This document shows, in pieces, positions 14,330 to 33,200 of a stretch of DNA of 64,000 bases; position 1 is the first letter of the stretch; every line of letters begins with the position of its first letter. The position numbers and the translations under genes were made by a program. The stretch is from the sequence record OR844650.1; one strand, written 5' to 3'. The notes under the pieces are model-generated. The model did not search any database, had not been told where the DNA came from, and saw only the letters and a list, made by a program, of their open reading frames with translations.

Positions 14330-14415
14330 TCACCCCACCAGCAGATAGTTACTCACCGTTATTAACTATATATTTTAGATACACTCCTGCACCCAGTGGG
14401 CTAGTTTTTGTCTAT
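14330..14415 (-). ncRNA. Putative small RNA or leader, CCCANNGGGTGC family copy A
   Basis: TTGACT-17-TATTAT promoter at 14422-14450, no ORF downstream, GCCCACTGGGTGC at 14389-14401. Confidence 0.4.
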
Positions 14416-14472
14416 GCGTATATAATAGCAAAGGGACTGACCGGAGTCAATCCCTTTTTTTATTCTTTTTTG

Positions 14473-14673
14473 TTAGATGATTCTCCAATCTTCTACGATC
14501 ATGGTAAGATAACGGACCATCGATTCAAGTGATTCGAATTCCCGATAGTCTGCCGCTCCACCAGCGGTACAAGTACAGCCGATTAAACCATTTTGTAATT
14601 CCTTAATCTGTACATCGATAAGGTTGGCTTTAGCTTCTTTCAGTACTTCAACCAGGGCGATAGCGATAGACAT
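14473..14673 (-). CDS. Early hypothetical protein
   Basis: 66 aa behind cassette. Confidence 0.75.
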   Translation of the reverse strand: MSIAIALVEVLKEAKANLIDVQIKELQNGLIGCTCTAGGAADYREFESLESMVRYLTMIVEDWRII

Positions 14674-14762
14674 AATGTTTTACTCCAAACTATTGACGGG
14701 AGAACTATTCCCCCGCTCTATGTAAAACATTATACATTACTTGTTAGTACTGTCAAATAGTT

Positions 14763-15020
14763 TTATGAAATATCTTCGATGTAGTCGGCCCATTTCATTT
14801 TTTCAGTACTGTCAATGGCTACCGGATTATTTGGATCAAACCATTCACCATTACCGCAGTACATACCAACGGCTACGGTTTTATAGCCATCCTGGGCCGT
14901 ACTCCACGACATTGCACGATAGATATGGCCTTTAACTGGTTGCAGTACTGGTAACGTTTTATGGTCTTCTACGTAGGCCATAGCTTGAGGATTTACCCGA
15001 TATTGTGTGAATTGTTCCAT
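14763..15020 (-). CDS. Early hypothetical protein
   Basis: 85 aa, own promoter. Confidence 0.75.
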   Translation of the reverse strand: MEQFTQYRVNPQAMAYVEDHKTLPVLQPVKGHIYRAMSWSTAQDGYKTVAVGMYCGNGEWFDPNNPVAIDSTEKMKWADYIEDIS

Positions 15021-15096
15021 GATGTTTCCCCTTGTAGTTAGTAAAGTTATTACATCAGTACTATCAAGCTATGTCAATAGTACTGAAATAAAACTT

Positions 15097-15321
15097 TTAG
15101 ATTAGATTATTGATGCCGTTGATGGTAGACTCGCTTTCTTCTTTCTCCCATTGGCGGTAGTACTTCCATGCTTCATGATATGTGGCGATTAGTTCATCTT
15201 TTTGATCCTGAGTACATGCCAGTACTGAATCACGGTGAGCGGTGTTATAGATAGAATCGAATGATTTCTTCTCTTCTGCCAGGTTAGCTACTTCCCGCAT
15301 CAGTTCATCAAAGTTAGCCAT
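15097..15321 (-). CDS. Early hypothetical protein (acidic, helical)
   Basis: 74 aa behind cassette. Confidence 0.75.
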   Translation of the reverse strand: MANFDELMREVANLAEEKKSFDSIYNTAHRDSVLACTQDQKDELIATYHEAWKYYRQWEKEESESTINGINNLI

Positions 15322-15388
15322 TTTATTACTCCTTTTAGTGGGGGAGGATATCTCCCCCTATGCAAAACATTATACTTTGTTTTAGTTA

Positions 15389-15652
15389 TTATGCAAGTAC
15401 TTTTTTCATATAAAGATTATATTCTACACCGCCGTAACCTTCTACGATGATATGTTTTGCGTTATCACGTTTGCACATAGTGAAACCGTTGTTGATGTGT
15501 TCTGCATTTTCCAGGGCGACATCACCGATAGCGGCACATACGGCACTAATAACAGTATTCCGCAAAGTACTGGTATCATTAGCGGTCATAGTAGTTTGCA
15601 GTACTACGTTGTCGTATACGTGTGCATTGATAGTGATTTCGATAGTGTTCAT
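15389..15652 (-). CDS. Early hypothetical protein
   Basis: 87 aa, CAGGAG RBS behind cassette. Confidence 0.75.
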   Translation of the reverse strand: MNTIEITINAHVYDNVVLQTTMTANDTSTLRNTVISAVCAAIGDVALENAEHINNGFTMCKRDNAKHIIVEGYGGVEYNLYMKKVLA

Positions 15653-15738
15653 GGTGTATCTCCTGGACTGGCGGGAGAACTATTCCCCCGCTCTATGTAA
15701 AACATTATACGTTAATCTAACTACAATGCAAGTACTTT

Positions 15739-15930
15739 TTAAATTTTATTTCCGATATAGTCCGGTCTATTCTTTTCGGTCATACGCTTTGCTAATGTTT
15801 GCATATGGCTTATTGCGTTTAATGTGTCTTCCTCCAGGGATGAATCAACATAATCAGGATCATTCTTCACCTTGCAATGATTATGATAGCGTAGTACTGC
15901 CAGTACTTTTTTAACTTCTTCTACTGTCAT
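15739..15930 (-). CDS. Early hypothetical protein
   Basis: 63 aa, coupled to upstream gene. Confidence 0.7.
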   Translation of the reverse strand: MTVEEVKKVLAVLRYHNHCKVKNDPDYVDSSLEEDTLNAISHMQTLAKRMTEKNRPDYIGNKI

Positions 15931-16199
15931 AATAAGTACCCCACTTCGTTAGCTTTCAGGTTAGTATCAATCATCAGTGGATTTTTGTAGTTCACAAAAC
16001 GATTAGTTTTCTCGATAGCGAATCCCATATAATCCAGCTTACTAACAGTACATTCATTCTTAAAAACTTCTTTCGCTGCATCGATGGCTGATTGCATGGA
16101 TAACCGACCATCTAAATTAATGTTTCCAAATGATCCACCAGCAGAAGTAGGATTACCGTTCATATCTTTAATGATCATAGTAGCGGAGTAGCTGGACAT
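15927..16199 (-). CDS. Early hypothetical protein
   Basis: 90 aa behind cassette. Confidence 0.75.
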   Translation of the reverse strand: MSSYSATMIIKDMNGNPTSAGGSFGNINLDGRLSMQSAIDAAKEVFKNECTVSKLDYMGFAIEKTNRFVNYKNPLMIDTNLKANEVGYLL

Positions 16200-16286
16200 A
16201 ATTTTGTTTCCTTTTAGTATCGGGGAGAACTATTCTCCCCTTGATGTAAACTATTATACAGTACTGATATACTTTGTCAAATACTT

Positions 16287-16694
16287 TTATTCGCCCATAT
16301 AGATTAGATTATCATCGCCTACATAGGGATCGCAAACGTTGATTTCTTCGCAGTACTTAGTGAATACATCGCCATAGTGACCTAAACCACGATCCCAAAA
16401 ACCAGTTCCGTGACCTTCGCGGGTAAGGAACAGATCATGACCAGCTTGCTCATAACCGTAATCAATAAACATACCGCGAACTACTTCCAGATCATTACCG
16501 TGTTTCTCAATGAAGCGAGAACATGCAATCACCGCCGCTTGACGTGCTTCATCAGATAACTCATAATCTTCCAGGTAATCGCCGTTATCATTATGTACAG
16601 TACTGAATTGCATAGCTTCAATGTAAGCTACAACCATTGCAGCATGATTTTTATCGTTAGTGATGTTCCGAGCGAGATTAGTAGTAGTAGACAT
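16287..16694 (-). CDS. Conserved phage early protein with GHDLFLTREGHGTGFWDR motif
   Basis: Motif recalled from a widespread uncharacterised phage family; behind cassette. Confidence 0.8.
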   Translation of the reverse strand: MSTTTNLARNITNDKNHAAMVVAYIEAMQFSTVHNDNGDYLEDYELSDEARQAAVIACSRFIEKHGNDLEVVRGMFIDYGYEQAGHDLFLTREGHGTGFWDRGLGHYGDVFTKYCEEINVCDPYVGDDNLIYMGE

Positions 16695-16777
16695 GATTTT
16701 ATTCCTTATTGTATTGGGGAGAACTATTCTCCCCTTGATGTAAACTATTATACAGTACTGATATACTTTGTCAATAC

Positions 16778-16999
16778 TTAATTACGTTTAAAATGATATG
16801 TGCCTTTATCATCCTGTACGCCCCACACTGATTTACCATCAACACCAGTGAAACCGGATTGTAATTCAATATGGAAACCATTATTATCAACTACAAAAAC
16901 TTTTTTATTTTCATCCCGATAACATTGATATTCTGAATCAACATTAAAGGCCGCATCATTCAGAAGATTGGAAGCGTAAATGCAAGTCATTGTAGTCAT
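16778..16999 (-). CDS. Early hypothetical protein
   Basis: Start MTTMTC after AAGGAA RBS. Confidence 0.75.
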   Translation of the reverse strand: MTTMTCIYASNLLNDAAFNVDSEYQCYRDENKKVFVVDNNGFHIELQSGFTGVDGKSVWGVQDDKGTYHFKRN

Positions 17000-17094
17000 G
17001 ATTTTATTCCTTATTACCAGGGAGAACCATTTCCCCCTCTCTATGTAAAACATTATACTTGATTCTAAGTACAATGCAAGTACTTTTTATCAAA

Positions 17095-17167
17095 TAGTTT
17101 TCAGTACTGAATACTTATATAATAGATACACTTCCGCACCCTATGGGTCAGTGAGTTATCTCTCAAT
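17095..17167 (-). ncRNA. Putative small RNA or leader, CCCANNGGGTGC family copy B
   Basis: Promoter 17174-17202; ACCCATAGGGTGC at 17136-17148; TGAG-AGATAA-CTCA hairpin. Confidence 0.4.
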
Positions 17168-17220
17168 GAATATATAATAGCAAAGGGACTGACCGGAGTC
17201 AATCCCTTTTTTAATCTTTT

Positions 17221-17805
17221 TTATCGTGTTACCTTACTTGCTTCTACATCACGCTTTTTATAGTACTGATTCCAGATATTGCGGGTTAAACCGTAATCAA
17301 GTACTTTAATAAGGCCGTTGCGATCCTGGCCGATATTCTGTTTTCTGATATCTCTTATCGTTAGTGTTGACAGTGTATCATCAACGTGTTGTAGTGCATC
17401 AGCAAAGCGGTGCTGGCGTTCAATTGCATTACGTTTAATATTGTACTTTAATTCGTTGCACGCGTTAACGTGCTTTACACTGCCTTTACTTGCAGTACTC
17501 AACCGATCCATAACGATAAACATATTATCAGGATCGCATAAATGCATATGCACCTTTGCAAAGTACTGTTTCAATTGAGGGCGGTCATAGTCTAAAAAAT
17601 TCCATACCTTACATTCAGTTTCATTTTGTTCTACACCCGCATCACAATTGGCGACCTTAATCACTAACCGATCATTTAAAGCGAATACAATACGGGAAGA
17701 ACCCGCACCGATGATCTCCAGACCAGCTAACCGACAAGCTGAAAGGATCTCTTTGTTGGTTTCCATTTCTGACAGGGTACGGATGAATTTAGTATAATTA
17801 CGCAT
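17221..17805 (-). CDS. Protein kinase-like (Ser/Thr kinase fold)
   Basis: Gly loop IGAGSSRIV, VIKVA, helix-C Glu, catalytic DIRKQN, DYG; start MRNYTK. Confidence 0.8.
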   Translation of the reverse strand: MRNYTKFIRTLSEMETNKEILSACRLAGLEIIGAGSSRIVFALNDRLVIKVANCDAGVEQNETECKVWNFLDYDRPQLKQYFAKVHMHLCDPDNMFIVMDRLSTASKGSVKHVNACNELKYNIKRNAIERQHRFADALQHVDDTLSTLTIRDIRKQNIGQDRNGLIKVLDYGLTRNIWNQYYKKRDVEASKVTR

Positions 17806-17836
17806 TGCATGTTCTCCTTGAGTTAATGAAACTATC

Positions 17837-18079
17837 TTACAGTACTTTACTATCAATGGCAACCACTTTTTTCACACTAACCGCGTGAATCACTTCCTTA
17901 GTGTTTTTAGTACTGAATACTTTCGCTGTTCCTTGTTCTACTGCAATGCGATAACGACCGTTAACATCAACCATATTAATAAAGTCCGGTGTACTAAACC
18001 GAGTAGTACGGCATTTCAGTACTGTTAACAGTTCCACCAGCGATGTAGTTTCTTTGATACGTTTTTCTAAAGTAATCAT
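17837..18079 (-). CDS. Early hypothetical protein
   Basis: Start MITLEK; upstream region duplicated at 18360-18411. Confidence 0.7.
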   Translation of the reverse strand: MITLEKRIKETTSLVELLTVLKCRTTRFSTPDFINMVDVNGRYRIAVEQGTAKVFSTKNTKEVIHAVSVKKVVAIDSKVL

Positions 18080-18136
18080 TTTGTTTTCCCCGTGTTGGTA
18101 TGTACATATAGTACTAAAACATTTGAGTACTGTCAA

Positions 18137-18355
18137 TTAGATAATTGCATATTTCTTTAAAGATAATGCGTCTTGGGTTGGCTGATACTCAATGCCGTTA
18201 CCGTTATCTACTTTAACTAATAAACCTTTGTCAATTAGTTTTTTAATAGTCCTTTGGCCTTGTTGAAAATTGGTAAAATGTGAATCATTACGAAAGGTAT
18301 AACCGTGCTTAACTGCTTCATCAATAGTTTTCTTTTCGATTTTAGATAATTTCAT
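18137..18355 (-). CDS. Small basic protein, possible winged-helix
   Basis: Start MKLSK; TIKKLIDKGLLVK pattern. Confidence 0.65.
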   Translation of the reverse strand: MKLSKIEKKTIDEAVKHGYTFRNDSHFTNFQQGQRTIKKLIDKGLLVKVDNGNGIEYQPTQDALSLKKYAII

Positions 18356-18408
18356 TTTGTTTCTCCCGTGTTGGTATGTGTACATAATACTAAAACAATT
18401 GAGTACTG

Positions 18409-18663
18409 TCAACGTGATATTAGTTTTATTTTCTTATTATATTGTTGATGTTCATAAAGGTTTATCTTTCCTGTGTTCTCTATTACTATTCTGTTGTTAG
18501 TGTCTACATCGATTACACGCAGTTTTCCGTTGCTTAACTTCCTTGGTAATAGGTTACCATTAATAAACTCATTAGCAAGCTGTACGGCCTTTGTGATGAT
18601 TCTCTGTGGTGCTTTATAGTGTACCCGCAAGATATTATCTTTAGATAGTTGTACCTTAATCAT
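18409..18663 (-). CDS. Possible ParE/RelE-like small basic protein
   Basis: LRVIDV..NRIV...G....YEHQQYNK resembles prophage ParE-like proteins ending in SHExYN (recalled pattern). Confidence 0.45.
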   Translation of the reverse strand: MIKVQLSKDNILRVHYKAPQRIITKAVQLANEFINGNLLPRKLSNGKLRVIDVDTNNRIVIENTGKINLYEHQQYNKKIKLISR

Positions 18664-18725
18664 TTTAGTTTATCCTATAAAAAAGGCGGGAACTGATCCC
18701 GCCGTGTTGTTAGTACTGCAAGTTA

Positions 18726-19130
18726 TTAGATAACCTGGCGGCGTTTACTGTATACTGTTACACGATTACCCTTACGGTCGTGTCGGATCTCTTTCTGGTT
18801 GCGAACCAGTTCACTTGGACGCTTAAGGTTTGCCAGGTGATCCGCGTGAGTCCAAGCGGTATGGTTTGTCTGTACTTTGATATCAGAATCAGCGATAAAT
18901 TCATCTTGTGCGTTAAGTACTGCCGCCAGTAAATCCGCTCGTTTTAGTTCTGCTGCTGTTAGTACTGGCTCCGGTGAATTCACGATATCAGAGATTTCTT
19001 TGAACTGTACGGCCCAGCGTTGACCTTTCGGTGCATCTTTGCCCATGTCTTTAAATGCTGCTCCTTCCTCGCGTGCAACAATACGGGCAGCTTCACGGGT
19101 AGCGTAGAATTTAGTAATCATGGTATACAT
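18726..19130 (-). CDS. Early hypothetical protein, paralogue of 31151-31417
   Basis: ATRE.AR..AR..GA.FKDMG...G.RWA and DRKGNRVTVY shared. Confidence 0.8.
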   Translation of the reverse strand: MYTMITKFYATREAARIVAREEGAAFKDMGKDAPKGQRWAVQFKEISDIVNSPEPVLTAAELKRADLLAAVLNAQDEFIADSDIKVQTNHTAWTHADHLANLKRPSELVRNQKEIRHDRKGNRVTVYSKRRQVI

Positions 19131-19216
19131 CCTATTAGTTGAGTTAGTACTACAAGTTAGAGTCTATTATAAAGTACTATCTGGGCAATGTCAAATAGTA
19201 CTTTAAATGGATTCTA

Positions 19217-19540
19217 TTACATGTCTTTCTTACGTTTTACATCGTAGTAGCGAACTGTTATTTCTTTGTTAATCTCTTTTTCGATGCGGTGAATAACTTT
19301 TTCTTTCGGGTTGAAACCTATAACGGTTTCTTTAATGATCTCCAAGCCCGTGTATTCTCCTTGTGTACCGTAACCGTAAGTAAAGGTTTCATGTCCCAAG
19401 TCTTCCCAGCGGTCGCCAATTAACGCGGACACGTAGCAAGAGTGGTAAGTGTTACCGTTCCGATCAGTCCAGCGATTAACTTTAATGTCAAAGGAGGTTA
19501 CAATTTTCAGTTCTACTTTCTGGGTAAGGATCATAGCCAT
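19217..19540 (-). CDS. Early hypothetical protein, paralogue of 25604-25927
   Basis: RWTDxxGNTYHSC and FTYGY, ends VKRKKD(M/L). Confidence 0.8.
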   Translation of the reverse strand: MAMILTQKVELKIVTSFDIKVNRWTDRNGNTYHSCYVSALIGDRWEDLGHETFTYGYGTQGEYTGLEIIKETVIGFNPKEKVIHRIEKEINKEITVRYYDVKRKKDM

Positions 19541-19627
19541 TTTTATTTCTCTCTCTTTGTTAGGAGGGGAACCATTCCCCTCGCTTGATGTAAACTATTA
19601 TACAGTACTAAGATACTTTGTCAATAC

Positions 19628-19810
19628 TTATTTTTTGGAAAGTTTACGCATTAATTCTACGCTTTCTTGTGAACGTTTTGCTACCTGGCAAGCTGTATGG
19701 GCAGTAAACATTTTTGTATAGTCTGACGCTTTGCCACCAAACCGAGCGGCACGTTCACGGGCACTTGGAACTAATACTATTTCTTTCTTGCAGATAGTGC
19801 ACTTAGCCAT
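19628..19810 (-). CDS. Small Cys/His (Zn-ribbon-like) early protein
   Basis: CxxC ... HxxC. Confidence 0.75.
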   Translation of the reverse strand: MAKCTICKKEIVLVPSARERAARFGGKASDYTKMFTAHTACQVAKRSQESVELMRKLSKK

Positions 19811-19897
19811 TTTAATTTCTCTCTTTTAGTTAGGAGGGGAACCATTTCCCCGCCTTGATGTAAACTATTATACAGTACTAAGATACTTTGTCAATAC

Positions 19898-20173
19898 TTA
19901 AGTATTGTAAATGTCGTGAATAGTGATAAAGTTTTTACGCCCGTAAACCTGTAAATCGGTATTAATGTAGTGCTTATCAAGTACATCCTCGACGCTTAAC
20001 GCGGTGTCGTGAATATCTTCGTAGAATTGGGGATCTACAATCTTGCTTAAGTCATCCGGCGTTAACTTATCGTTAAGCCATTGAACCGCCTGGATATCTG
20101 CATCACGTTTCCATTGTTCCAGGTTAGTAGTCAGTACTTGCTCGATTTCGTTAGCTGTCAGTAGAATCCGCAT
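19898..20173 (-). CDS. Early hypothetical protein
   Basis: 91 aa, own promoter 20207-20234. Confidence 0.75.
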   Translation of the reverse strand: MRILLTANEIEQVLTTNLEQWKRDADIQAVQWLNDKLTPDDLSKIVDPQFYEDIHDTALSVEDVLDKHYINTDLQVYGRKNFITIHDIYNT

Positions 20174-20239
20174 TTTAATGTTTCCTTATCAGTGGTTGAT
20201 GTAAGTATTATACTCGTTTACTTTCTATTGTCAAACTAT

Positions 20240-20317
20240 TTTATCAGGGGAGTTTTTCGTATGTCTTACTCCTGGACTACTTAACGGGGTTACTTGTTTC
20301 GTTCCCCGTCCTGATGT
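20240..20317 (-). ncRNA. Putative two-hairpin small RNA or long leader, copy 1 (copy 2 at 30470-30550)
   Basis: Strong promoter with no RBS/ORF before the next promoter; ACGGGG/CCCCGT stem. Confidence 0.4.
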
Positions 20318-20364
20318 AAAACATTATACTTGATTCTAAGTACAATGCAAGTACTTTTTAAAAA

Positions 20365-20434
20365 TAGTTTTCAGTACTAGCCACCAGCAAACAATAGATA
20401 CATTTATGCACCCTGTGGGCTGATTTGTTTCTAT
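20365..20434 (-). ncRNA. Putative small RNA or leader, CCCANNGGGTGC family copy C
   Basis: Promoter 20441-20469; motif 20408-20420; Chi at 20381. Confidence 0.4.
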
Positions 20435-20487
20435 GCGTATATAATAGCAAAGGGACTGACTGGAGTCAATCCCTTTTTCAAATATTT

Positions 20488-20637
20488 TTAAACTTCTTTC
20501 GGGTTGCGATAGGTGATAGCGTTCGGGTACATTTGTTTAATGTTATTCCATGCCTGGTTAACATTATAACCACTTGAGCGAATCAGTTGGTTACTACCGA
20601 CACCTTGAAACACTACTTCGAATAAGAATTCTTTCAT
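20488..20637 (-). CDS. Small early protein (49 aa, MKEFLFEVVF...)
   Basis: Hand translation; ATGA-coupled to upstream gene. Confidence 0.65.
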   Translation of the reverse strand: MKEFLFEVVFQGVGSNQLIRSSGYNVNQAWNNIKQMYPNAITYRNPKEV

Positions 20638-20807
20638 GCTTTCACCTCGCTATCTGCTTTACCTTTACGCCAGGACATTACTAATTGTTCGCGTTGCCAT
20701 AAGTCGAGTGATACAAAAAGTTTTGCGGTATCACTTTTAGGATACTCGCCATTAGTACCTAACCGATAAAATAGATCTTTCAGTACTGATAATTCTACTT
20801 GGATCAT
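20634..20807 (-). CDS. Small early protein
   Basis: Start MIQVELS behind cassette. Confidence 0.7.
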   Translation of the reverse strand: MIQVELSVLKDLFYRLGTNGEYPKSDTAKLFVSLDLWQREQLVMSWRKGKADSEVKA

Positions 20808-20893
20808 TATACTTTCCTTTTTGTTAGGAGGGGAACTATTCCCCTCTCGATATAAAACATTATACACTTTATTCAGTACTGTGCAAGTACTTT

Positions 20894-21106
20894 TTAATCT
20901 TTCAGCCAATGATCTTGGATGAATTTTTCACCGAAGCCTTGCTGCATGGATTGTAACAGTCGTTCACGGTGAGCGGCGGCAAATTGCTCAGTACTATGCG
21001 TTACACCTGGTTGATAACGTGATTCACCATTGGGGGCGATGTATTGTACATCCCACGGTTTAGCGTTAGTATCAGACCATTTACGAACGATTAGTTGACC
21101 TTGCAT
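20894..21106 (-). CDS. Early hypothetical protein
   Basis: Start MQGQ after GAGGA. Confidence 0.7.
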   Translation of the reverse strand: MQGQLIVRKWSDTNAKPWDVQYIAPNGESRYQPGVTHSTEQFAAAHRERLLQSMQQGFGEKFIQDHWLKD

Positions 21107-21193
21107 TTTTCTTTCCTCAGTACTGGGGAGAATCATTTCTCCCCTTCATGTAACTTATTATACAGTACTATAATCTATTGTCCAGTACTTTTT

Positions 21194-21382
21194 TTACAGT
21201 TTATGAATCAATTCTTTATCTAAGCGATAGCGTACATTATTAATGGTAACAGCATTATTTTTAATGCTACGCTGTACTGGCCCACCAGCAATAACAAACG
21301 TTGCCTTATTACCCCGAACAATAATAGCACTTCCTGGATTGCTGTATTCATCTTGTACTAAAATACTTGATAAGTTTTCCAT
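21194..21382 (-). CDS. Early hypothetical protein
   Basis: 62 aa behind cassette. Confidence 0.7.
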   Translation of the reverse strand: MENLSSILVQDEYSNPGSAIIVRGNKATFVIAGGPVQRSIKNNAVTINNVRYRLDKELIHKL

Positions 21383-22017: not shown

Positions 22018-22023
22018 ATAATC

Positions 22024-24939: not shown

Positions 24940-24944
24940 ATTAA

Positions 24945-26246: not shown

Positions 26247-26474
26247 TTAATTTAATTCATCAAGGCAAAGGATACGCTCAACGCCCAAATCAGTTAAACT
26301 AATCGACGGCACTTGATAGGTTTCAATGTATGCTACACTTGCCCACTGACCGAACTCATTAACGGCCCAGGTATTCATTGCATTTTGCAATTCCGCACCT
26401 TCCTTGTTGGTAATGACTGCAACTACTTGTTCGTTGCCAGTAGTACCAGATACGCGAGTAATGATAATAGCCAT
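26247..26474 (-). CDS. Early hypothetical protein
   Basis: Start MAIII after AAGGAA. Confidence 0.7.
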   Translation of the reverse strand: MAIIITRVSGTTGNEQVVAVITNKEGAELQNAMNTWAVNEFGQWASVAYIETYQVPSISLTDLGVERILCLDELN

Positions 26475-26711
26475 TGTTTTGATTCCTTTGATTTGGAAGG
26501 AGAACCGTTTCCCCCTCTCGATGTAAAACATTATACGCTAATCTCTTAATCGTGCAAGTACTTTTTATTACTTTTTGCAAAATACTTTAAACGCTCTCAA
26601 TCGCATTCTAACGACCTTAACGCCACCAGCTAGGGCGATGCATCAGATAATCAGTTTAATGCGTTAGAATCGATTCTAGGCGGTGCTGGTGGCCTGGTAA
26701 ACGATAAACAC

Positions 26712-26737
26712 AAAAAAGCCCACTTATGCAGTGGGCT
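26712..26737 (-). terminator. Intrinsic terminator
   Basis: AGCCCAC-TGCATAA-GTGGGCT then T run on minus strand. Confidence 0.75.
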
Positions 26738-26758
26738 AGTGATTCAGTACTTTAATTG

Positions 26759-27241
26759 TTATGCTTCAACTTTGCGATGAGATTCGATCCATTCCTCGCG
26801 AGTCATACCGCTGGCGTTAATCGCGTCCAGTACTACCGCAATACAGTTACCACGCACCGGAATCAGATATTCTTCCCCGTTGTCCAGTACTACCGCTACG
26901 CGTTCCTGAATCCATTTTTTGGCTTTTACTTCTGGCTTGTCTTCCCCATACTTAACCGCCAGGGCTTTTTGTGCCATCTCTGTAACTACTTCCAGATCCA
27001 ATCCAACTACTGCCGCCTGAATACTTTCGATTGTTGCTTGTAGTTCTGCTTCACGGGCCGCCTTTGCCGCTTCAATTTCTGCCGCTTTATTTGCTTGTAG
27101 TTCTTTCGCAGTACTGTACGCGATGTTAAAATTATTGCGTACCGCTTTCATGGTATCGTTATCCAGTTCAGCCAGGATCTCAGCCGCGACGTTAGTTTCA
27201 TTTGCTACCAGTGCTTTGATGAATGATTTTACATTAGCCAT
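26759..27241 (-). CDS. Coiled-coil early protein
   Basis: Start MANVK; Ala/Glu/Lys-rich helix. Confidence 0.8.
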   Translation of the reverse strand: MANVKSFIKALVANETNVAAEILAELDNDTMKAVRNNFNIAYSTAKELQANKAAEIEAAKAAREAELQATIESIQAAVVGLDLEVVTEMAQKALAVKYGEDKPEVKAKKWIQERVAVVLDNGEEYLIPVRGNCIAVVLDAINASGMTREEWIESHRKVEA

Positions 27242-27446
27242 TTTATAAATCCTCAATTAAAGTTTAGTTTACGTTTATTAGTGTATCAAAGTTTTCTCGA
27301 CGTGTCCAGTTTTTCGTTCGACTTACTGGCGGTCTACTTAGTGCTCCCCGTCTTGATGTAATACATTCTACGCTTTTCTGCGGTAATGTCAACTACTTTT
27401 TTAAAACTATTTTCAAAGTATCTCAGTACTACGATACTACAAAAAC

Positions 27447-27469
27447 AAAAAAAGCCCACCAGGTGGGCT
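27447..27469 (-). terminator. Intrinsic terminator
   Basis: AGCCCAC-CTG-GTGGGCT then long T run on minus strand. Confidence 0.75.
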
Positions 27470-27475
27470 ATGTAC

Positions 27476-27706
27476 TTAATCAGTGAGTAAAATATTAAAC
27501 ACTTTACCATTTAACGTTATTGGTGCACTGCTACCAGGCTCAAGATCCGTTAGTATACCTGCAATCGCTTTATCATTGGCGACCTTTCCAGTGTCCAACA
27601 GTACGACAGTACTGATAAGATTAACGCTCGTTTCAATATCATAATGCACGGCGTTAAGTAGTTGTGTAGTACTGCTTTCGTTAAGTAAAACAATTCGCTT
27701 AGTCAT
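27476..27706 (-). CDS. Early hypothetical protein
   Basis: 76 aa. Confidence 0.7.
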   Translation of the reverse strand: MTKRIVLLNESSTTQLLNAVHYDIETSVNLISTVVLLDTGKVANDKAIAGILTDLEPGSSAPITLNGKVFNILLTD

Positions 27707-27727
27707 GATGTTACCCCGTAGTATCTA

Positions 27728-28027
27728 TCAACGGCAATTAATAACGCCAGTATGAGTTACTTTCTCAGTATCCATAACAGTGACCGAACCGCGTTTAGTA
27801 CTTGCATCGTAATAAATTGTCGTGCTACCTTTTTCGTCTTCTTCATGGAACGGCCCGTTTTTAAATGCTTCCGGCTGGATCTCTAAATCCTTTAATACAA
27901 TCTCGCCAGTTCTTTCATCGGTCATTGCAACAGTGCACTGAATGAATTTTTCACTACTTACATCTAATGACGCATTAACAGCGAAAGAGGAAACAGATAA
28001 AGCCAGGGCGATGATTGCAATTTTCAT
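27728..28027 (-). CDS. Exported early protein with signal peptide
   Basis: MKIAIIALALSVSSFAVNA signal-peptide pattern. Confidence 0.75.
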   Translation of the reverse strand: MKIAIIALALSVSSFAVNASLDVSSEKFIQCTVAMTDERTGEIVLKDLEIQPEAFKNGPFHEEDEKGSTTIYYDASTKRGSVTVMDTEKVTHTGVINCR

Positions 28028-28111
28028 TTGATTATCCTTAGTTACCAGGGGGAACCGCTCCCCCTTGCGATGTAAAATATTATACAGTACTAAAAACTAT
28101 TATCAAGTACT

Positions 28112-28348
28112 TTATGATTTTTTATAAAACATTTCAGCAGTGATATTTTTACCCGTTGGCTGTACTTTATCCAGAATTTTTTGATGCCCTGGCCGTCCAA
28201 ATGAATATGATCCGTAAACCGTAAACCAGTAGTTACCCTCAGTGTTTACATGTACAGCACAATAGGGAACGCCCCGCGATTCATCACTAGTAAAGTGTGC
28301 TACCGTTCCCGTTACATTCGAAGACGTTGATTTGATTTGTTCGACCAT
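28112..28348 (-). CDS. Early hypothetical protein
   Basis: 78 aa behind cassette. Confidence 0.7.
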   Translation of the reverse strand: MVEQIKSTSSNVTGTVAHFTSDESRGVPYCAVHVNTEGNYWFTVYGSYSFGRPGHQKILDKVQPTGKNITAEMFYKKS

Positions 28349-28491
28349 TTTCTTATTCCTTAGTTACCAGGGGAACCGCTCCCCCTATGCAAAACATTAT
28401 ACGCGTTTAAAAACTAATTGCAAGTATTTTAATAAAAAGTATTTGAAAAATAGTTGTTGACAAGTGCATCCAGTACTGGCATAATTACTAC

Positions 28492-28600
28492 ATCAAGACG
28501 AAACAGTCACTAACCCACCGGGTGCCGAGATCCGTCTATTAAATGATTCAGTACTGAAAAAGTAACGGGGAGTTATTATCTCCCCGCGTTGTTATTTTGT
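28492..28600 (+). ncRNA. Putative plus-strand small RNA, CCCANNGGGTGC family copy G
   Basis: TTGACA-17-CATAAT at 28457-28485, motif 28513-28525, CGGGGAG/CTCCCCG hairpin 28566-28586; no ORF. Confidence 0.5.
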
Positions 28601-28813
28601 AAGGTATAAACAGAAGTCACCTTTATTTGCTACGCCGCCAGTGTAACGCGATGAATAGTTAGAAACGTCCTGGACTTCTGCTATTACCAGGGTATCATCA
28701 TTCAATTCGTCGCAGAAGCAAACGGCTGGATCTTGTACGCCGATTTTGTCGGCATGTTCCCGCATAGATTTAACCAGTGCTTCCAGTTGGGAAAGAGTAG
28801 TGATATTAGCCAT
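28592..28813 (-). CDS. Early hypothetical protein
   Basis: Start MANITT after GAGGA. Confidence 0.7.
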   Translation of the reverse strand: MANITTLSQLEALVKSMREHADKIGVQDPAVCFCDELNDDTLVIAEVQDVSNYSSRYTGGVANKGDFCLYLTK

Positions 28814-28900
28814 TTTATTTTCCTCATTACCAGGGAGAACCATTTCCCCCCTCTATGTAAACCATTATACAGTACTGAAAACTAATTGCAAGTACTTTTT

Positions 28901-29104
28901 TTAATTTAATTGCTTTAAAACATAATCAAAGACACCACGCACATCATTGATCATTGCCGTGCGGTTAGCAGGTAACGCATCAGGATCGCCACTATCCCAG
29001 GCATTGATAAAACTCCCCAAATCATGAAAGATTTTATTCTGTAAGCCGATTAACTGCAATTCTTTTTCTTCAAGCTCTTTGATACGTTCAATTAAATCAC
29101 TCAT
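28901..29104 (-). CDS. Early hypothetical protein
   Basis: Start MSDLIE after AAGGA. Confidence 0.7.
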   Translation of the reverse strand: MSDLIERIKELEEKELQLIGLQNKIFHDLGSFINAWDSGDPDALPANRTAMINDVRGVFDYVLKQLN

Positions 29105-29121
29105 TATATAATCCTTAGTAC

Positions 29122-29403
29122 TTAACTGTAAGATCCGCAACGGTCGCAGTAGTGCCCCTCGTCATCGTCAACGAATTGACCAACGAAATTATCTACTTTC
29201 GCTTTCAGGTTATTATAATCGTTTTCTACTTCCTTTAAACGCTTCTGGTAGTATTCCAGTGCTTTAAGATATGCCGCGTCAGCAGTTTTCTCCTGCATAG
29301 CTAAATTCATGCCACGCGTTTCATCGTACAGCCAAAAACCATCGGTGCACTGGCTAATAGATAATGACTTGCTTAGTACTGTATAGTTAATTACTTTACT
29401 CAT
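29122..29403 (-). CDS. Early hypothetical protein
   Basis: Start MSKVIN after GAGGG. Confidence 0.75.
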   Translation of the reverse strand: MSKVINYTVLSKSLSISQCTDGFWLYDETRGMNLAMQEKTADAAYLKALEYYQKRLKEVENDYNNLKAKVDNFVGQFVDDDEGHYCDRCGSYS

Positions 29404-29461
29404 TAGATAAACCCTCAATAAAGGCGGGAACCATTCCCCGCCATTGTTACAGTACTGAATA

Positions 29462-29701
29462 TTACATTCCAACCATTGCAGCACGGATCGCCGTAGTGCT
29501 ATACTTGAATCCGTCCGGCGTTGTAGTAGTACCGTTGGCTTTTAATCTGCGGTACATACATTCCGCAGCAATATCTTTAGTTCTACTTTGTGCGATGCAA
29601 CTTTGAGCAAGCCGATACAATGACTCACCGTTATTAATCCATAAGGAAACATTCCAATGAGTTTTGTTTTTGTGCCCGTTGTAAGTTTTAGTACTAGCCA
29701 T
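29462..29701 (-). CDS. Early protein, paralogue of 31501-31740
   Basis: GHKNKTHWNVSLWINN and identical TPDGFKYSTTAIRAAMVGM end. Confidence 0.8.
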   Translation of the reverse strand: MASTKTYNGHKNKTHWNVSLWINNGESLYRLAQSCIAQSRTKDIAAECMYRRLKANGTTTTPDGFKYSTTAIRAAMVGM

Positions 29702-29793
29702 TTTTTTTAATCCTCGTTTGAGCGGGGAACCACTCCCCGCCTCGATATAAAGTATTATACGCCTTTAAACTTAGTTTGCAAGTACTTTTTAAA

Positions 29794-30405
29794 TTAATAT
29801 TCGATTGATTCTACTACACCATCAATGACATTGAATTGATATTCGTTACCCTCAATCAGTGCCGTAATGTTTTCAGTAGTGAATTGATCCTCATATGCAT
29901 TCTCTAAATCACGGTACAACTTGCGGGACAATTCACGAATAGTGTCAGTGAGTAGTTCCTCAAGCTCATTAACTAACGTTTCTTGTTTTGCGGTTAAATC
30001 AGTGTAAGCCGATTCAATGTACCCGCTTACAGTGTTCTCATGCGAGTAGTGGGAGTGAGAACGCTTTACACTCATCGCCAAATCATCTTCATTCAGCAAG
30101 TGACGGATTGAGCGATACTTAGTTAATGCTCTTACCTTGCGTAAAAACTTCACTGCGTCAACGTGGTCAGTACTGATTGATGCACCGTCACCCTGGGACC
30201 AAAAACCACTGAATTGTATTTCAGCGTCATTAATGCCATATTCCGGTAGTACTGTTTCTTTATAGTATTCAATTTCACTTTCAGAAAAATAATCATCGTT
30301 TAAGTTTTTTTCACGTTCCCGAACCAGTTCGATAGCTGACGTTTTTTGTTCTGCGTTCAATTCAGAAAAATCCATAACGAAAGTAGTAGTAGTGATAGTT
30401 TTCAT
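29794..30405 (-). CDS. Acidic conserved phage early protein (FSGFWSQGDGAS motif)
   Basis: 203 aa, Glu/Asp-rich; motif recalled from a widespread phage family. Confidence 0.8.
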   Translation of the reverse strand: MKTITTTTFVMDFSELNAEQKTSAIELVREREKNLNDDYFSESEIEYYKETVLPEYGINDAEIQFSGFWSQGDGASISTDHVDAVKFLRKVRALTKYRSIRHLLNEDDLAMSVKRSHSHYSHENTVSGYIESAYTDLTAKQETLVNELEELLTDTIRELSRKLYRDLENAYEDQFTTENITALIEGNEYQFNVIDGVVESIEY

Positions 30406-30469
30406 TTTGTAACTCTCATTCAGTAGTTGATGTAAGTATTATACGCTTTTAAAAACATTTGTCAAACTA

Positions 30470-30550
30470 TTTTATCAGGGGAGTTTTTCGTGTGCCTTAC
30501 TCCTGGGCTACTTAACGGGGAGTTACTTATTTCGTTCCCCGTCCTGATGT
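30470..30550 (-). ncRNA. Putative two-hairpin small RNA or long leader, copy 2
   Basis: Near-identical to 20240-20317; ACGGGGA/TCCCCGT stem. Confidence 0.4.
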
Positions 30551-30664
30551 AAAACATTATACGCCTTTAAACATAGTTTGCAAGTACTTTTTAAAAATAG
30601 TTTTCAGTACTGAATATTAAAAAAAAGTATTGACAGCATTATCAAGTACTGGCATAATATACCC

Positions 30665-30767
30665 CATGACAACAGCTAACCCACCGGGTGCACAATTGTA
30701 ACTGTAATAAACTACTTTTTCTATAGATACACTCCCGCACCCTATGGGCTACGGCTTATCTGCCAAT
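30665..30767. ncRNA. Convergent pair of motif-bearing transcripts (copy H plus, copy E minus)
   Basis: Plus promoter 30630-30658 with motif 30679-30691; minus promoter 30774-30802 with motif 30737-30749. Confidence 0.45.
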
Positions 30768-30832
30768 GAATACATTATGCCAGTACTGACAAAATAAGTC
30801 AATACCGGCAATTGTAAAGATTTGTAAACTGC

Positions 30833-31063
30833 TTATACTGCAATCGCGTCCAGGCTATAATAATAATAAGTGCCGTATTGGTGTACTTTATTACCTTTTA
30901 TTTCAGTACTGAATGAATCCGAACGGTTTGCATATGATGTTAATTTAAAGTACTTTGATTTGCTGATACGTTGCCATACACCGCAGATCCGCTGTAAGTA
31001 AGTAGTTTTATTCGTGGTAGTATCTTTTACGGTTTTAACTTCAGTCATATACATATTAGTCAT
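30833..31063 (-). CDS. Early hypothetical protein
   Basis: 76 aa behind cassette. Confidence 0.7.
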   Translation of the reverse strand: MTNMYMTEVKTVKDTTTNKTTYLQRICGVWQRISKSKYFKLTSYANRSDSFSTEIKGNKVHQYGTYYYYSLDAIAV

Positions 31064-31150
31064 TTTTATTACTCCAGGTTATAGGCGGGATGTGTTCCCG
31101 CTCTAGATGTAAAACATTATACGCCATTAAACATAGTTTGCAAGTACTTT

Positions 31151-31417
31151 TTATTCAAGTACTGCAATCTTTTTAGTACGGTACACGGTCACGCGGTTGC
31201 CCTTTCGGTCGAGCTTTATTTCTACCACTCGACGCGATACACTATCGGGACTTTTTAAGGCCGCTAACCAGTACTGTAATGATCTGGCTGTACTACGCTT
31301 TACAATGGCCCAACGTTCACCACTTGCCGATCCCGCACCCATATCTTTAAACGTTGCCCCGTCCTGGCGAGCGGCGATCCGAGCTTGTTCACGCGTCGCA
31401 AAATACTTAATATTCAT
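31151..31417 (-). CDS. Early protein, paralogue of 18726-19130
   Basis: Start MNIKY. Confidence 0.75.
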   Translation of the reverse strand: MNIKYFATREQARIAARQDGATFKDMGAGSASGERWAIVKRSTARSLQYWLAALKSPDSVSRRVVEIKLDRKGNRVTVYRTKKIAVLE

Positions 31418-31500
31418 GCTGTTGCCCTTATCGTTGGTGTATGAATAAAACACTATTATAAAGTACTATCACCGTGCAATAGTACTTTAAATAAATTCTA

Positions 31501-31740
31501 TTACATTCCAACCATCGCCGCACGGATCGCAGTAGTGCTATATTTGAATCCGTCCGGTGTTTTATCTTGTCCAGTCTGTTCTAAAAATAGCATCATATGA
31601 CGGGCCGCATCATTGCGATTAGTGCTATCGTTAATAAAGTCCTGGGCCAACCGGTACAATGATTCATCGTTATTAATCCAAAGGCTTACATTCCAATGAG
31701 TTTTGTTTTTGTGACCTAAGAACATTTTTGATTTTGCCAT
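31501..31740 (-). CDS. Early protein, paralogue of 29462-29701
   Basis: Start MAKSK after GAGGA. Confidence 0.8.
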   Translation of the reverse strand: MAKSKMFLGHKNKTHWNVSLWINNDESLYRLAQDFINDSTNRNDAARHMMLFLEQTGQDKTPDGFKYSTTAIRAAMVGM

Positions 31741-31823
31741 TTTTTTTAATCCTCTTATATAGTGGGGAACTATTCCCCACCTGATGTAAAACATTATACG
31801 CTTTTAAACTTAGTTTGCAAGTA

Positions 31824-32057
31824 CTATTTTTTCAGTACTGGTAAACCTTTGATCTCACCTGGCTGTACTTCCTCAAAGGCGACCGCCATCATACGGCTAT
31901 CATCTTCCTTACATTCTTCCATCGCATCACAAAAATGATTAATAACGTCCGGTGCAACGTCAACCACATCAAACAAGCCAACCTCAGTGCAACGGCTTAA
32001 AGCGTTTAATAGGTCAGTCAGTGCAACGGATTGAGAAACAGTTAAAATAGTACTCAT
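31824..32057 (-). CDS. Early hypothetical protein
   Basis: 77 aa behind cassette. Confidence 0.7.
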   Translation of the reverse strand: MSTILTVSQSVALTDLLNALSRCTEVGLFDVVDVAPDVINHFCDAMEECKEDDSRMMAVAFEEVQPGEIKGLPVLKK

Positions 32058-32151
32058 AAAATTAATCTCTTAATTTTAGTGGGGAACTATTCCCCACCTG
32101 ATGTAAAACATTATACGCCATTAAACATAGTTTGCAAGTACTTTATTAAAC

Positions 32152-32514
32152 TTATTTGTAAATTTTGCCACTGTCAGCCCATACCAGGAAACGAGGCATA
32201 TTATCCCATGCATCTTGTTTTAAGTTTAAGCCGTGCAATTCCTCAGTTGTTGCCATCCCTGGTACTGGCTTACTACACACCGCGAAATTTTCGCCCATGT
32301 ACTGATAAACCATCGTCAAATCATTTGAGATCATTACATGGATCATTGAATCAAGCATCAAAGTAGCGGCGTATTGTTCACGCTTAAGCGGCAACATTGC
32401 AATAAGTTCCCGATAAGCTGCAATGTGAATTTTTACAGTTTCAGCCGGAAGACCTTTCATCTCTTCGCGGAAGTTTACCAGGTTAAGCATGATTTTAGTG
32501 ATTTGAGTCGCCAT
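32152..32514 (-). CDS. Early hypothetical protein
   Basis: Start MATQI behind cassette. Confidence 0.75.
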   Translation of the reverse strand: MATQITKIMLNLVNFREEMKGLPAETVKIHIAAYRELIAMLPLKREQYAATLMLDSMIHVMISNDLTMVYQYMGENFAVCSKPVPGMATTEELHGLNLKQDAWDNMPRFLVWADSGKIYK

Positions 32515-32907
32515 CGTTTTAATCTCTCTTAATGTGTAGCGGGAAGTGTTCCCGCTCTCGATGTAAAACATTATACGCCTTTAAACATAGTTTGCAAGTA
32601 CTTTCTACATGTACTTTTAAAATAGTTTTCTTTCTATATAGGGGAACTATCATTCAGTACTGCAACCATCCAGGGGAACTATCTTTCTATATAGGAGTAC
32701 TATTATTCAGTACTGAATCAACCAAATCACTACTACACCCCGTAAAACGGCCTCAGACGCATTCTAACGCATTAATACACCTAAGCTATACATTTGCACC
32801 ATTCCAATCATTCCAGGGCTTTACGGGCCGTTTAAACGCGTTAAATTATTTTCAATTATTTTGTTTTTAGGTATTGACTTGATCCTGAAAAAGCGTATAA
32901 TTACTAC

Positions 32908-33200
32908 ATAGACGCGAGAAAGCGGAAACCCCAGAGGGTGCGGAATTACGCCCAAAATTCAAGATATAAAAAAAGGATACACTCCCGCACCCTAGCAGGT
33001 AAACGCACTTTCTCAGTACTGAAATATAGTACCATAGTACGGCCCAGGATAGCAAGCAAATTAATTAAAACTTTTTTGCTTCCAGGGTATTGCTTTATTT
33101 TTTCAGTACTGTATAATAGTTCCATCAAGTCGAGAAAGACTCAAGCCCACCGGGTGCATAGTTACGCCCAAAATTCAGTACTGAAAAAATTTTTAAAAAA
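32908..33200 (+). ncRNA. Two tandem plus-strand motif-bearing transcripts (copies I, J) with opposing degenerate copy F
   Basis: Promoters 32874-32901 and 33090-33117; motifs 32929-32941 and 33145-33157, each followed by TTACGCCCAAAATTC. Confidence 0.4.

Follow-up and report, generated by a model that had tools for sequence, protein, structure and literature searches.

Cassettes in the terminal repeat

The window, the whole 64,000-nt stretch of OR844650.1 that was analyzed, belongs to an Asteriusvirus (121Q/PBECO4-like) jumbo phage, a giant phage of E. coli. RaK2-like jumbo phages have been widely isolated, often as therapy candidates, and the early regions in their terminal repeats are annotated almost entirely as hypothetical proteins. 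The direct terminal repeat of the present phage spans about 21.5 kb and is the home of small early genes. The repeat of vB_Ec-M-J is annotated at 1-21525, and its base 1 aligns with window position 34247; shifts in G+C content and skew were observed at about 12-13 kb and about 34 kb of the window. Nearly every early gene in the repeat has its own promoter, and early promoters other than those described below also have a 5' hairpin before the RBS. No tRNA or tmRNA was found in the window.

The first-pass annotation had listed ten sites of a conserved motif, and all ten were recovered at the positions it gave. The sequence RCCCANNGGGTGC occurs exactly at eight of these sites, against 0.02 expected from shuffles. 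The plus-strand site at 32929 is near-exact, with one mismatch, and the minus-strand site at 32987 is degenerate, being visible in the sequence and missed by the covariance model at E≤1. All copies lie inside the terminal repeat; the model returned nine of them, all within 14.3-33.2 kb, and gave no credible match over the remaining 44 kb of the window. The motif is part of a module of about 45 nt that comprises a 5' hairpin (H1; 3 to 5 bp with a 6- to 8-nt A/purine-rich loop, starting 2 to 6 nt from the predicted 5' end), an invariant CCC..GGGTGC segment (CCC, a 3- to 4-nt loop, and GGGTGC), and a downstream box. AT-rich sequence is found downstream of the module.

A tool scan predicted a sigma-70-type promoter upstream of every window copy, in keeping with the near-consensus −10 boxes noted in the annotation. 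The cassette promoters match the host sigma-70 consensus closely, with the end of the −10 box 20 to 28 nt before the motif start and 27 to 35 nt before GGGTG. The module was always directly behind the promoter and in a single orientation relative to it. The broader description of a multicopy element tied to host-type promoters in the terminal-repeat early region was likewise borne out.

Table 1. Terminal repeat and module cassettes in the window (positions in nucleotides)
Feature	Coordinates	Strand	Motif	Promoter	Hairpin or terminator-like site	Covariance model match
Direct terminal repeat, approximate extent (right bound exact by homology, left bound an estimate)	12700..34247	.				
Cassette 1, sense	14375..14457	-	14389-14401, exact	14450..14422	hairpin 14457..14430	14374-14416, E 5e-7
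Cassette 2, sense	17122..17209	-	17136-17148, exact	17202..17174	hairpin 17209..17182	17121-17168, E 4e-17
Cassette 3, sense	20394..20476	-	20408-20420, exact	20469..20441	hairpin 20476..20449	20393-20435, E 2e-8
Cassette 4, sense	23863..23950	-	23877-23889, exact	23943..23915	hairpin 23950..23923	23862-23909, E 1e-15
Cassette 5, solitary antisense	28457..28596	+	28513-28525, exact	28457..28485	terminator-like 28566-28586	28493-28540, E 4e-14
Cassette 6, plus member of face-to-face pair 1	30630..30705	+	30679-30691, exact	30630..30658		30670-30706, E 7e-6
Cassette 7, minus (sense) member of pair 1	30723..30802	-	30737-30749, exact	30802..30774		30722-30768, E 3e-11
Cassette 8, plus member of face-to-face pair 2	32874..32955	+	32929-32941, one mismatch	32874..32901		32909-32956, E 5e-6
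Cassette 9, degenerate minus member of pair 2	32964..33055	-	32987, degenerate	weak, match 8/12	terminator-like 32993..32974	
Cassette 10	33090..33171	+	33145-33157, exact	33090-33117, match 9/12		33125-33172, E 1e-12

Cassette 1 reads, in order, a −35 box inside the terminator-like hairpin of the upstream operon, the −10 box, the predicted start, an A-rich tract (a weak H1), CCC..GGGTGC, and the 3' box. Cassette 2 has the same layout with an H1 of 4 bp and a 6-nt purine-rich loop; H1 is again 4 bp in cassette 4, and cassette 3 has an A-rich tract without a clear H1 stem. Behind each of these four copies, a second promoter, a 5' hairpin, an RBS, and a PHROG-matching ORF begin within 60 to 260 nt, and the next ORF lies about 330 nt downstream of the motif of cassette 7 and about 415 nt downstream of that of cassette 9. 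The ORFs downstream of cassettes match PHROG families of unknown function. Because gene-specific promoters follow the sense copies, these genes were deduced not to depend on the cassette promoter.

In cassette 5, the promoter and module are followed by a CAGTACTG box and by a terminator-like hairpin that the cassette has in common with the converging gene. This hairpin starts 46 nt past the first G of GGGTG, predicting a stand-alone RNA of about 100 nt. Cassette 6 is without an H1 stem. Its predicted start and that of cassette 7 are about 100 nt apart, and both RNAs would therefore be complementary. The H2 loop, between CCC and GGGTGC, is 4 nt in cassette 8, while in cassette 9 the upstream CCC is altered and the H3 hairpin, formed by GGG with the downstream box, scores together with a T run as a terminator. 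Cassette 10 faces the genome end and an array of 8-bp repeats.

The six minus-strand copies are co-oriented with genes and, except for the degenerate cassette 9, have no terminator-like site behind them. The plus-strand copies oppose the local genes, as had been reported. The description of all copies as ORF-less units was correct for these four plus-strand copies, which alone are ORF-less in the strict sense, and not for the sense copies, which run into a second promoter and genes. Similarly, no RBS or ORF follows within the first 100 nt or so, or longer; beyond that distance the statement fails at the sense copies.

Covariation and distribution of the module

The covariance model found 63 copies across phages of six genera, and metagenomic jumbo contigs gave another 56. 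The module was present in Asteriusvirus, Mimasvirus, Alcyoneusvirus, Eneladusvirus, and Munch-like phages, and the invariant segment spans phages of seven host genera. Matches in IMG/VR came only from contigs of about 345-378 kb and from shorter metagenomic contigs (5-109 kb). Covariance model searches of phage genomes and IMG/VR gave no copy outside the jumbo-phage lineage, and the module is thus, on these searches, restricted to that one lineage, which is lytic. Against Rfam 15, there was no match at gathering thresholds across the window and none on any copy at E≤5, and the searched literature held no description of the module. The conserved, repeated early RNA module therefore matches no Rfam family and no account in that literature, as the annotation had supposed.

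The covarying stem that the annotation had seen in H1 held in the window and in the relatives. All four H1 pairs were changed on both sides in 20 to 29 of 64 sequences, with 93% of cells paired, and the covariation score was 0.46, compared with 0.15 for shuffled alignments and no more than 0.07 for slid registers. This covariation was replicated on the 56 further sequences. The 55 hairpins contain 31 distinct stems, G-U pairs among them, and the loops are not the same in all copies. In 8 of 63 copies, or about one in eight, the H1 stem is missing and the rest of the module is kept. The H2 stem, 3 to 4 bp of CCC with GGG, is supported by three independent CCT/AGG double changes, in CBB, in Yen9-03, and in a metagenomic contig. 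From the covarying H1 and the compensatory changes in H2, sequence comparison shows selection at the RNA level.

For H3, the five core pairs were pairable in 88 to 100% of sequences, against at most 73% in slid registers, since the G/U strand is invariant and nearly all changes in the 3' strand facing it are transitions; the support for this helix is one-sided variation only. Since the GGG run can pair with either the upstream CCC (H2) or the downstream box (H3), the RNA is potentially bistable. The two folds are near-isoenergetic, H2 being present in 40 of 63 minimum-energy folds and H3 in 18. Single-sequence folding energies were unremarkable (z-scores of −1.1 to −1.5).

Across the lineage, 41 of the 63 copies are sense and 22 oppose genes. 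A terminator-like site occurs within 150 nt in only 5 of the 41 sense copies. At six independent solitary antisense loci (8 of the 22 antisense copies), including window positions 28457-28596, a terminator-like hairpin starts 41 to 47 nt past the first G; the U tracts behind these hairpins are interrupted. The remaining antisense copies belong to face-to-face pairs, whose spacing of 68 to 91 nt is kept across genera. In CBB, BF, and Munch, the genome end is about 1 kb away from paired cassettes; in the window, such cassettes lie within 1.5-3.6 kb of it. The module thus occurs in three fixed arrangements: a leader, a stand-alone unit with a terminator-like hairpin, and a face-to-face pair. The features of a stand-alone small-RNA gene (own promoter, intrinsic terminator, and no ORF) fit 8 of the 22 antisense copies and not the 36 sense copies without a terminator-like site.

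Candidate functions

It is tentatively proposed that the cassettes have as their product a structured RNA, autonomous and made early, which a putative partner binds in a sequence-specific manner and which probably acts in trans. Each copy would be a self-contained cassette in which a strong host sigma-70-type promoter places the module of about 45 nt within a few bases of the 5' end. As the cassettes lie only in the terminal repeat with small early genes, host polymerase could make the RNA without any phage protein. The short RNA would be abundant and would be recognized by RNA polymerase or by a protein, in either case a conserved partner; most likely it would work in trans, be it as a binding site, as a sponge, or as a regulator; at sense copies, the module would also form the 5' end of early mRNAs. 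The starts, ends, timing, and abundance of these RNAs are predictions, and we infer that the RNAs are made early, are abundant, act in trans, and have a partner. A third of the lineage copies have no gene to serve, and these gene-less copies, together with the fixed-distance terminator-like hairpin at six loci, favor the RNA itself as the product. The predominance of co-oriented copies, so few of them with a nearby terminator-like site, fits a cis-acting leader equally well.

A more specific form of this proposal, which we consider doubtful, is an immediate-early RNA effector that host polymerase would make ahead of all phage proteins: either a compact RNA that rides on RNA polymerase and reprograms it, or a decoy present in many copies and titrating a conserved host factor for RNA binding or defense, with the H2 and H3 folds as a binding switch. 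A decoy of a defense protein in particular is speculation. Were the RNA to act on polymerase or a host factor, RNA-based take-over would extend from temperate lambdoid to large lytic phages. The early regions of the terminal repeats also contain a deeply conserved noncoding component, about ten per genome, and a defined predicted RNA of 45-100 nt with a ready covariance model opens the earliest minutes of jumbo-phage infection to direct study.

Noncoding phage RNAs that are bound in place of a host RNA, and that are multicopy or strongly expressed, include pseudo-ToxI of phage phiTE and the Racr RNAs. The annotation had drawn both parallels. Pseudo-ToxI consists of short repeats in tandem that are processed into units, whereas the window copies are dispersed 0.2-7 kb apart and Tandem Repeats Finder found no array at any of them; a type III antitoxin mimic was rejected on this ground. 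Racr RNAs copy the host CRISPR repeat, whereas a search of 5,426 complete E. coli genomes with an 81-nt unit returned nothing at E≤10, and a Racr-type copy of an E. coli CRISPR repeat was rejected within the reach of that search (about 24 nt or longer; shorter mimicry falls below it). A precedent is provided by the Pseudomonas jumbo phage PA5oct, in which ncRNA001 and ncRNA002 (236 and 451 nt) lie inside the long terminal repeat, contain no ORF, and are abundant by RNA-seq, accounting for 1.2-5.1% of phage reads across the phases of infection (PMC7318152). These RNAs resemble the module in being ORF-less and located in the terminal repeat of a related jumbo phage. The covariance model found no module copy in the PA5oct repeat (best E, 0.11).

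The main rival, which we judge unlikely, is a cis-acting leader that modifies host polymerase for antitermination or antipausing through early-region terminators, either put-like (RNA alone) or nut-like (RNA plus a factor). In lambda-type nut sites, boxA is accompanied by boxB, a hairpin bound by the arginine-rich N protein. The module is similar in that a small purine-rich-loop hairpin, recalling boxB, lies in an early leader beside a conserved single-stranded or short-helix element. It differs in its 6- to 8-nt H1 loops, which vary between copies, in the copies without a stem, in copy number and orientation, and in the lytic habit of its lineage, and a crude, insensitive scan of all repeat ORFs found no N-like arginine-rich protein (at most 5 Arg in any stretch of 18). 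The put RNA of HK022 acts in cis on the beta' zinc-binding domain of polymerase and suppresses terminators without protein factors; it has long bulged stems and a triplex, and its two copies per genome both serve downstream genes. It is about 70 nt with two stem-loops, and host sigma-70 polymerase transcribes it directly downstream of an early promoter (PMC9378689). Like put, which is located just downstream of PL (PMC9378689), the module offers two adjacent small hairpins near the 5' end, directly behind a promoter of the host sigma-70 type, and has more than one copy per genome. Its orientation relative to the promoter is always the same. Compared by its described dimensions, put is the longer RNA (about 70 nt against about 45; PMC9378689), and the module has about ten copies per genome, a third of them opposing genes or facing a terminator-like hairpin; with stems of only 3 to 5 bp (H1) and 3 to 4 bp (H2), the module does not have the dimensions of an HK022-type put RNA, and no Rfam family was matched. 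A conserved surface, for example that of RNA polymerase, would be a fitting contact for a segment that stays invariant in phages from seven host genera, and terminator-like sites are frequent in the region (23, against 13 expected). However, the solitary antisense copies meet a terminator-like hairpin at +41 to +47 with no genes beyond, and the face-to-face pairs would drive resistant polymerases into one another; the nut-like reading of the annotation fits badly with both. Read-through would also not be needed, because almost every early gene has its own promoter.

It is quite improbable that the DNA or the act of transcription, rather than the RNA, is selected, with the invariant segment or the 3' box as an operator or roadblock for a DNA-binding protein related to one that binds the 8-bp array, or with the promoters serving DNA entry, origin activation, or R-loops in the terminal repeat. 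In favor of this reading, CCC..GGG is palindromic as DNA, no cassette lies outside the terminal repeat, the paired ones are found close to the end of the genome, and AT-rich sequence follows the module. The 3' box shares its core with the 8-bp repeats at 33341-33439, which are conserved in CBB at 715-805 and adjoin terminus-proximal cassettes in both phages; because of this loose resemblance, the H3 box may be a DNA site. The exact 8-bp pattern, however, is only weakly enriched in the window (15 occurrences against 8.8) and matches one window cassette. The strong H1 covariation, including G-U pairs, points to a folded single strand, and the symmetric CCT/AGG changes keep pairing yet would harm a palindrome bound by protein in each of its half-sites. 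The spacing between promoter and module varies by 8 nt, unlike that of promoter-proximal DNA signals.

The least probable reading is a stabilizer or processing signal, in which the hairpins would shield early transcripts against decay that depends on the 5' end, or would show where cleavage takes place: it would agree with the position of H1 close to the predicted 5' end and with the 5' hairpins at other early promoters of the region, but it leaves copies without a downstream gene hard to explain, protection by a hairpin would not require 12 nt to stay invariant from genus to genus, and the copies that lack the H1 stem retain everything else.

Motif copies and promoters in the terminal repeat

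By megablast, the window was assigned to the genus Asteriusvirus, as part of an Escherichia jumbo phage related to 121Q, PBECO4 and G17, and phage EC22.5-2 was 100% identical to it. The annotation of the relative vB_Ec-M-J has a direct terminal repeat at positions 1-21525, and base 1 of that repeat aligned with window position 34247. From this alignment and the length of the repeat, the span of motif copies (14389-33157) was deduced to lie entirely within the terminal repeat. An equivalent repeat of 22,456 bp, packed with small early genes, is present in Pectobacterium phage CBB. Small minus-strand genes make up nearly the whole gene content of the terminal repeat, whose G+C content and skew are unlike those of its flanks. 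The position corresponding to the physical genome end of the relative is bracketed by a pair of short arrays, each built of a 10-bp unit. The large genes of the 40-58-kb region are annotated in relatives as repeated "regulator of chromosome condensation"-like proteins and are highly variable among them (20-50% coverage).

The first-pass annotation had described a multicopy motif, and this was borne out by eight exact sites against 0.02 expected, together with a ninth copy with one mismatch and a tenth that is degenerate. The promoter scan placed a sigma-70-type promoter before 8 of the 10 copies; these promoters agree with the consensus at 10-11 of 12 positions, and most have a TG-extended -10 box. 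The promoters of the last two cassettes (9 and 10; a cassette being a promoter with its RNA module) were weaker, at 8/12 and 9/12 consensus positions; their coordinates, and the spacing given here, come only from a sigma-70 hexamer-matching script and not from the promoter scan. Since the end of the -10 box lies 27-35 nt before the GGGTG of the motif, this spacing is close rather than fixed. For four sense copies the -35 box is located inside a 12-bp hairpin with a T-rich tail, which in the scan scored as a terminator belonging to the preceding operon. The same terminator-promoter fusion was also seen in copies from CBB, RaK2, BF, Yen9-03 and Munch. A second, larger promoter family comprises 29 near-consensus copies with 16-bp spacers, each leading into a conserved start region, then a G/C-rich 5' hairpin, then an RBS; almost every small early gene thus forms a cassette of its own.

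Conservation and predicted structure of the module

A 121-nt unit was found in distant relatives (RaK2, K64-1, Muenster, GAP32, CBB, Munch, 7t3, Serratia phage BF, Erwinia phages and Yersinia phage fHe-Yen9-03), with 73-76% identity in most of them. The comparison set consisted of 63 distinct promoter-linked copies from six phages, 13 of which were used to train a covariance model. The covariance and Rfam searches proposed in the first-pass annotation were both run. The former recovered nine copies in the 64-kb window (E 4e-17 to 7e-6), all at 14.3-33.2 kb and with no credible match elsewhere in it, and 56 more distinct copies from metagenomic jumbo contigs. When 2.9 million IMG/VR contigs were scanned with a degenerate pattern, the only matches were in genomes of ~345-378 kb and in metagenomic contigs that are shorter (5-109 kb). 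By genus, the module occurs in Asteriusvirus, Mimasvirus, Alcyoneusvirus and Eneladusvirus, and it is absent from PA5oct. No Rfam family matched the module at gathering or permissive thresholds, nor did tRNA and tmRNA searches match the copies, and literature searches on these phages, their lineage and the motif found no description of the element or of a conserved leader.

The RNA start was predicted at an A ~7 nt past the -10 box, and from there the module is composed of a 5' hairpin (H1), a spacer of 3-5 nt, an invariant segment and a 3' box. H1 was present in 55 of the 63 copies, with 31 different stems of 3-5 bp and an A/purine-rich loop of 6-8 nt. The covarying stem noted on first reading was upheld, as all four pairs change on both sides in 20-29 sequences. 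Pairing was found in 93% of cells, and the covariation score was 0.46 versus 0.15 for shuffled alignments (0 of 500 shuffles reached 0.46) and at most 0.07 with the partner slid. The covariation was repeated in an independent metagenomic set. H1 is an RNA structure.

Within the invariant segment, C occupies the two positions before the loop in 63 and 61 of the 63 copies, and A opens the loop in 60. The bases of GGGTG are kept in 61, 63, 63, 62 and 63 copies, respectively, and the next base is C in 57. The 3' box comprises five variable, mostly purine bases, a T in 60 of 63 copies, and five columns that vary almost exclusively by transitions (T48/C15, A44/G19, T50/C9, C57/T6 and T45/C15).

Two further helices draw on the same G's. 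H2, in which CCC pairs with GGG, showed hardly any variation, and a CCT/AGG double change that keeps the pair was observed in three copies from different phages. H3, between GGGTG and the five transition-only columns, was pairable in 97.8% of cells in register versus at most 73% when slid (88-100% for the individual pairs). Because its variation is one-sided, this pattern fits RNA pairing against an invariant G/U strand, without proving it. H2 and H3 are mutually exclusive and near in energy, the minimum-energy fold containing H2 in 40 and H3 in 18 of the 63 copies. The copy at 32987, which is degenerate, has an altered upstream CCC, and its H3 with the T run scores as a terminator. Folding-energy z-scores (-1.1 to -1.5) were uninformative as to thermodynamic stability. 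Several minimum-energy folds hinted at a long-range helix joining the H1 loop region to the 3' box; it was rejected because the mean helix was 4.03 versus 4.11 in permuted sequences, with no within-sequence excess. It is considered very likely that a structured RNA module is transcribed from the cassette promoters.

Genomic settings and proposed role

Sense copies account for 41 of the 63, six of them in the window, and a terminator-like site within 150 nt was found for only 5 of the 41. The four at 14389-23877 are followed 60-90 nt on by a second promoter, a member of the 29-copy family, and then by real genes. The description of the units as ORF-less was therefore withdrawn for the sense copies. 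In the solitary antisense copies, a terminator-like hairpin starts 41-47 nt after the first G at six independent loci with unrelated hairpin sequences, a position that predicts stand-alone RNAs of about 100 nt.

Other copies form face-to-face pairs, with motifs 68-91 nt apart (most commonly 68), in the window (30679/30737 and 32929/32987) and in CBB, BF, Yen9-03, Munch and RaK2; in CBB, BF and Munch the genome end always has one pair ~1 kb away. Since the predicted starts of a pair are ~100-110 nt apart, the two RNAs would be complementary. The wider-spaced pairs (79-91 nt) have an AT-rich palindrome between the modules, such as GATAATGATAATCATT in Munch, which may resemble an iron-regulator (Fur) box. 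This palindrome was not present in the window's own pairs.

From the ten ORFs near or downstream of the cassettes, a family scan returned just one DUF (Pfam), the remaining matches being to PHROG families without an assigned function. The 30679/30737 pair is followed, as its first sizeable gene, by a 203-aa ORF that matched only phrog_5162 (function unknown) and showed no sign of RNA binding; its identity to the corresponding gene of Salmonella phage Munch, the first sizeable one behind the terminal pair there, was 46%.

On the simplest reading the RNA itself would be the product, since a third of the copies serve no gene and the genes lying behind sense copies have promoters of their own. That it acts in trans as an autonomous RNA is put forward tentatively, at somewhat below even chances. 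Across phages of Escherichia, Klebsiella, Salmonella, Cronobacter, Pectobacterium, Serratia and Yersinia, the invariant segment stays the same and its surroundings drift, which points to sequence-specific recognition by a putative conserved partner. No partner was nominated, and the earlier suggestion of a defence decoy is thus a speculative possibility. The likeness to pseudo-ToxI was dropped, as pseudo-ToxI is tandem whereas the module copies in the window are not. A close mimic of an E. coli CRISPR repeat, or of another E. coli sequence, was rejected because the 81-nt unit had no match in 5,426 complete E. coli genomes. The nearest biological precedent is in PA5oct, whose terminal repeat gives rise to two abundant ORF-less transcripts (PMC7318152). 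These resemble the module in location, but the module itself is not shared, and homology was rejected as the covariance model found no copy there.

The main rival to an RNA product is a cis-acting leader of the put or nut type, which would account for the sense copies and for the location next to the promoter but leaves the pairs, and the solitary copies with a terminator-like hairpin, unexplained; it is judged unlikely. The put RNA of HK022 (PMC9378689) is larger than the module and differently used, and a crude scan of ORFs in the terminal repeat found no N-like arginine-rich small protein. Selection on a feature of the DNA rather than the RNA is improbable, and a role solely as a 5' stabiliser is a slightly poorer prospect still, as both fit poorly with the covariation or the invariance.

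Coordinates of features associated with the cassettes and the terminal repeat
Feature	Sequence	Position	Strand	Remark
Cassette -35 in stem-loop of preceding operon's terminator-like hairpin	Window	14430-14457, 17182-17209, 20449-20476, 23923-23950		Terminator-promoter fusion
29-member promoter family	Window	13848-33896		e.g. 17041-17093, 28853-28905
Terminator-like hairpin of solitary antisense copy	Window	28566-28586	+	One of six independent loci
203-aa ORF	Window	29794-30405	-	
AT-rich palindrome	BF	about 1030-1060		
AT-rich palindrome	Yen9-03	about 340-370		
AT-rich palindrome	Munch	about 1040-1070, 7430-7460		
AT-rich palindrome	RaK2	about 11950-11990		
Palindrome CAGTACTG	Window	13254, 17102, 28471, 28549, 33104, 33176, 36729-36976, 57637-57680		Example sites
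Octamer GCTGGTGG	Window	14335-33670		11 sites
Octamer GCTGGTGG	Window	40877-54724		4 sites
Tandem 8-bp units	Window	33341-33439		Weaker copies to 33506
8-bp unit	CBB	715-805		
10-bp unit arrays	Window	34160-34183, 34389-34426		Either side of 34247
Large genes	Window	40000-58000	+	

Repeated DNA words

The 8-bp palindrome CAGTACTG occurs 64 times in the window against about 1 expected. It was found in promoter spacers, 29-39 nt past the GGGTG of several window cassettes, and in coding regions far from the terminal repeat, and its AGTACT core can likewise be seen in sequences from CBB, RaK2, BF, Yen9-03 and Munch. A genome-wide palindrome excess of this kind is unusual for a phage. The octamer GCTGGTGG, presumably the E. 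coli Chi sequence, was counted 15 times against 0.76 expected and is strand-biased, with nine minus and two plus copies at 14-34 kb and all four plus past 34 kb. Two copies directly follow cassettes 1 and 3, and ~600 bp short of the genome end there is a back-to-back pair.

An array of ~12 tandem 8-bp units separates the last cassette from the genome end, and the core of the unit resembles the module's 3' box. That the two are the same element is a minor possibility, since only this core is in common and the exact match occurs in just one window copy. The array may be a packaging or replication signal. CBB has the same unit, placed and oriented alike with respect to the cassette that faces the terminus.
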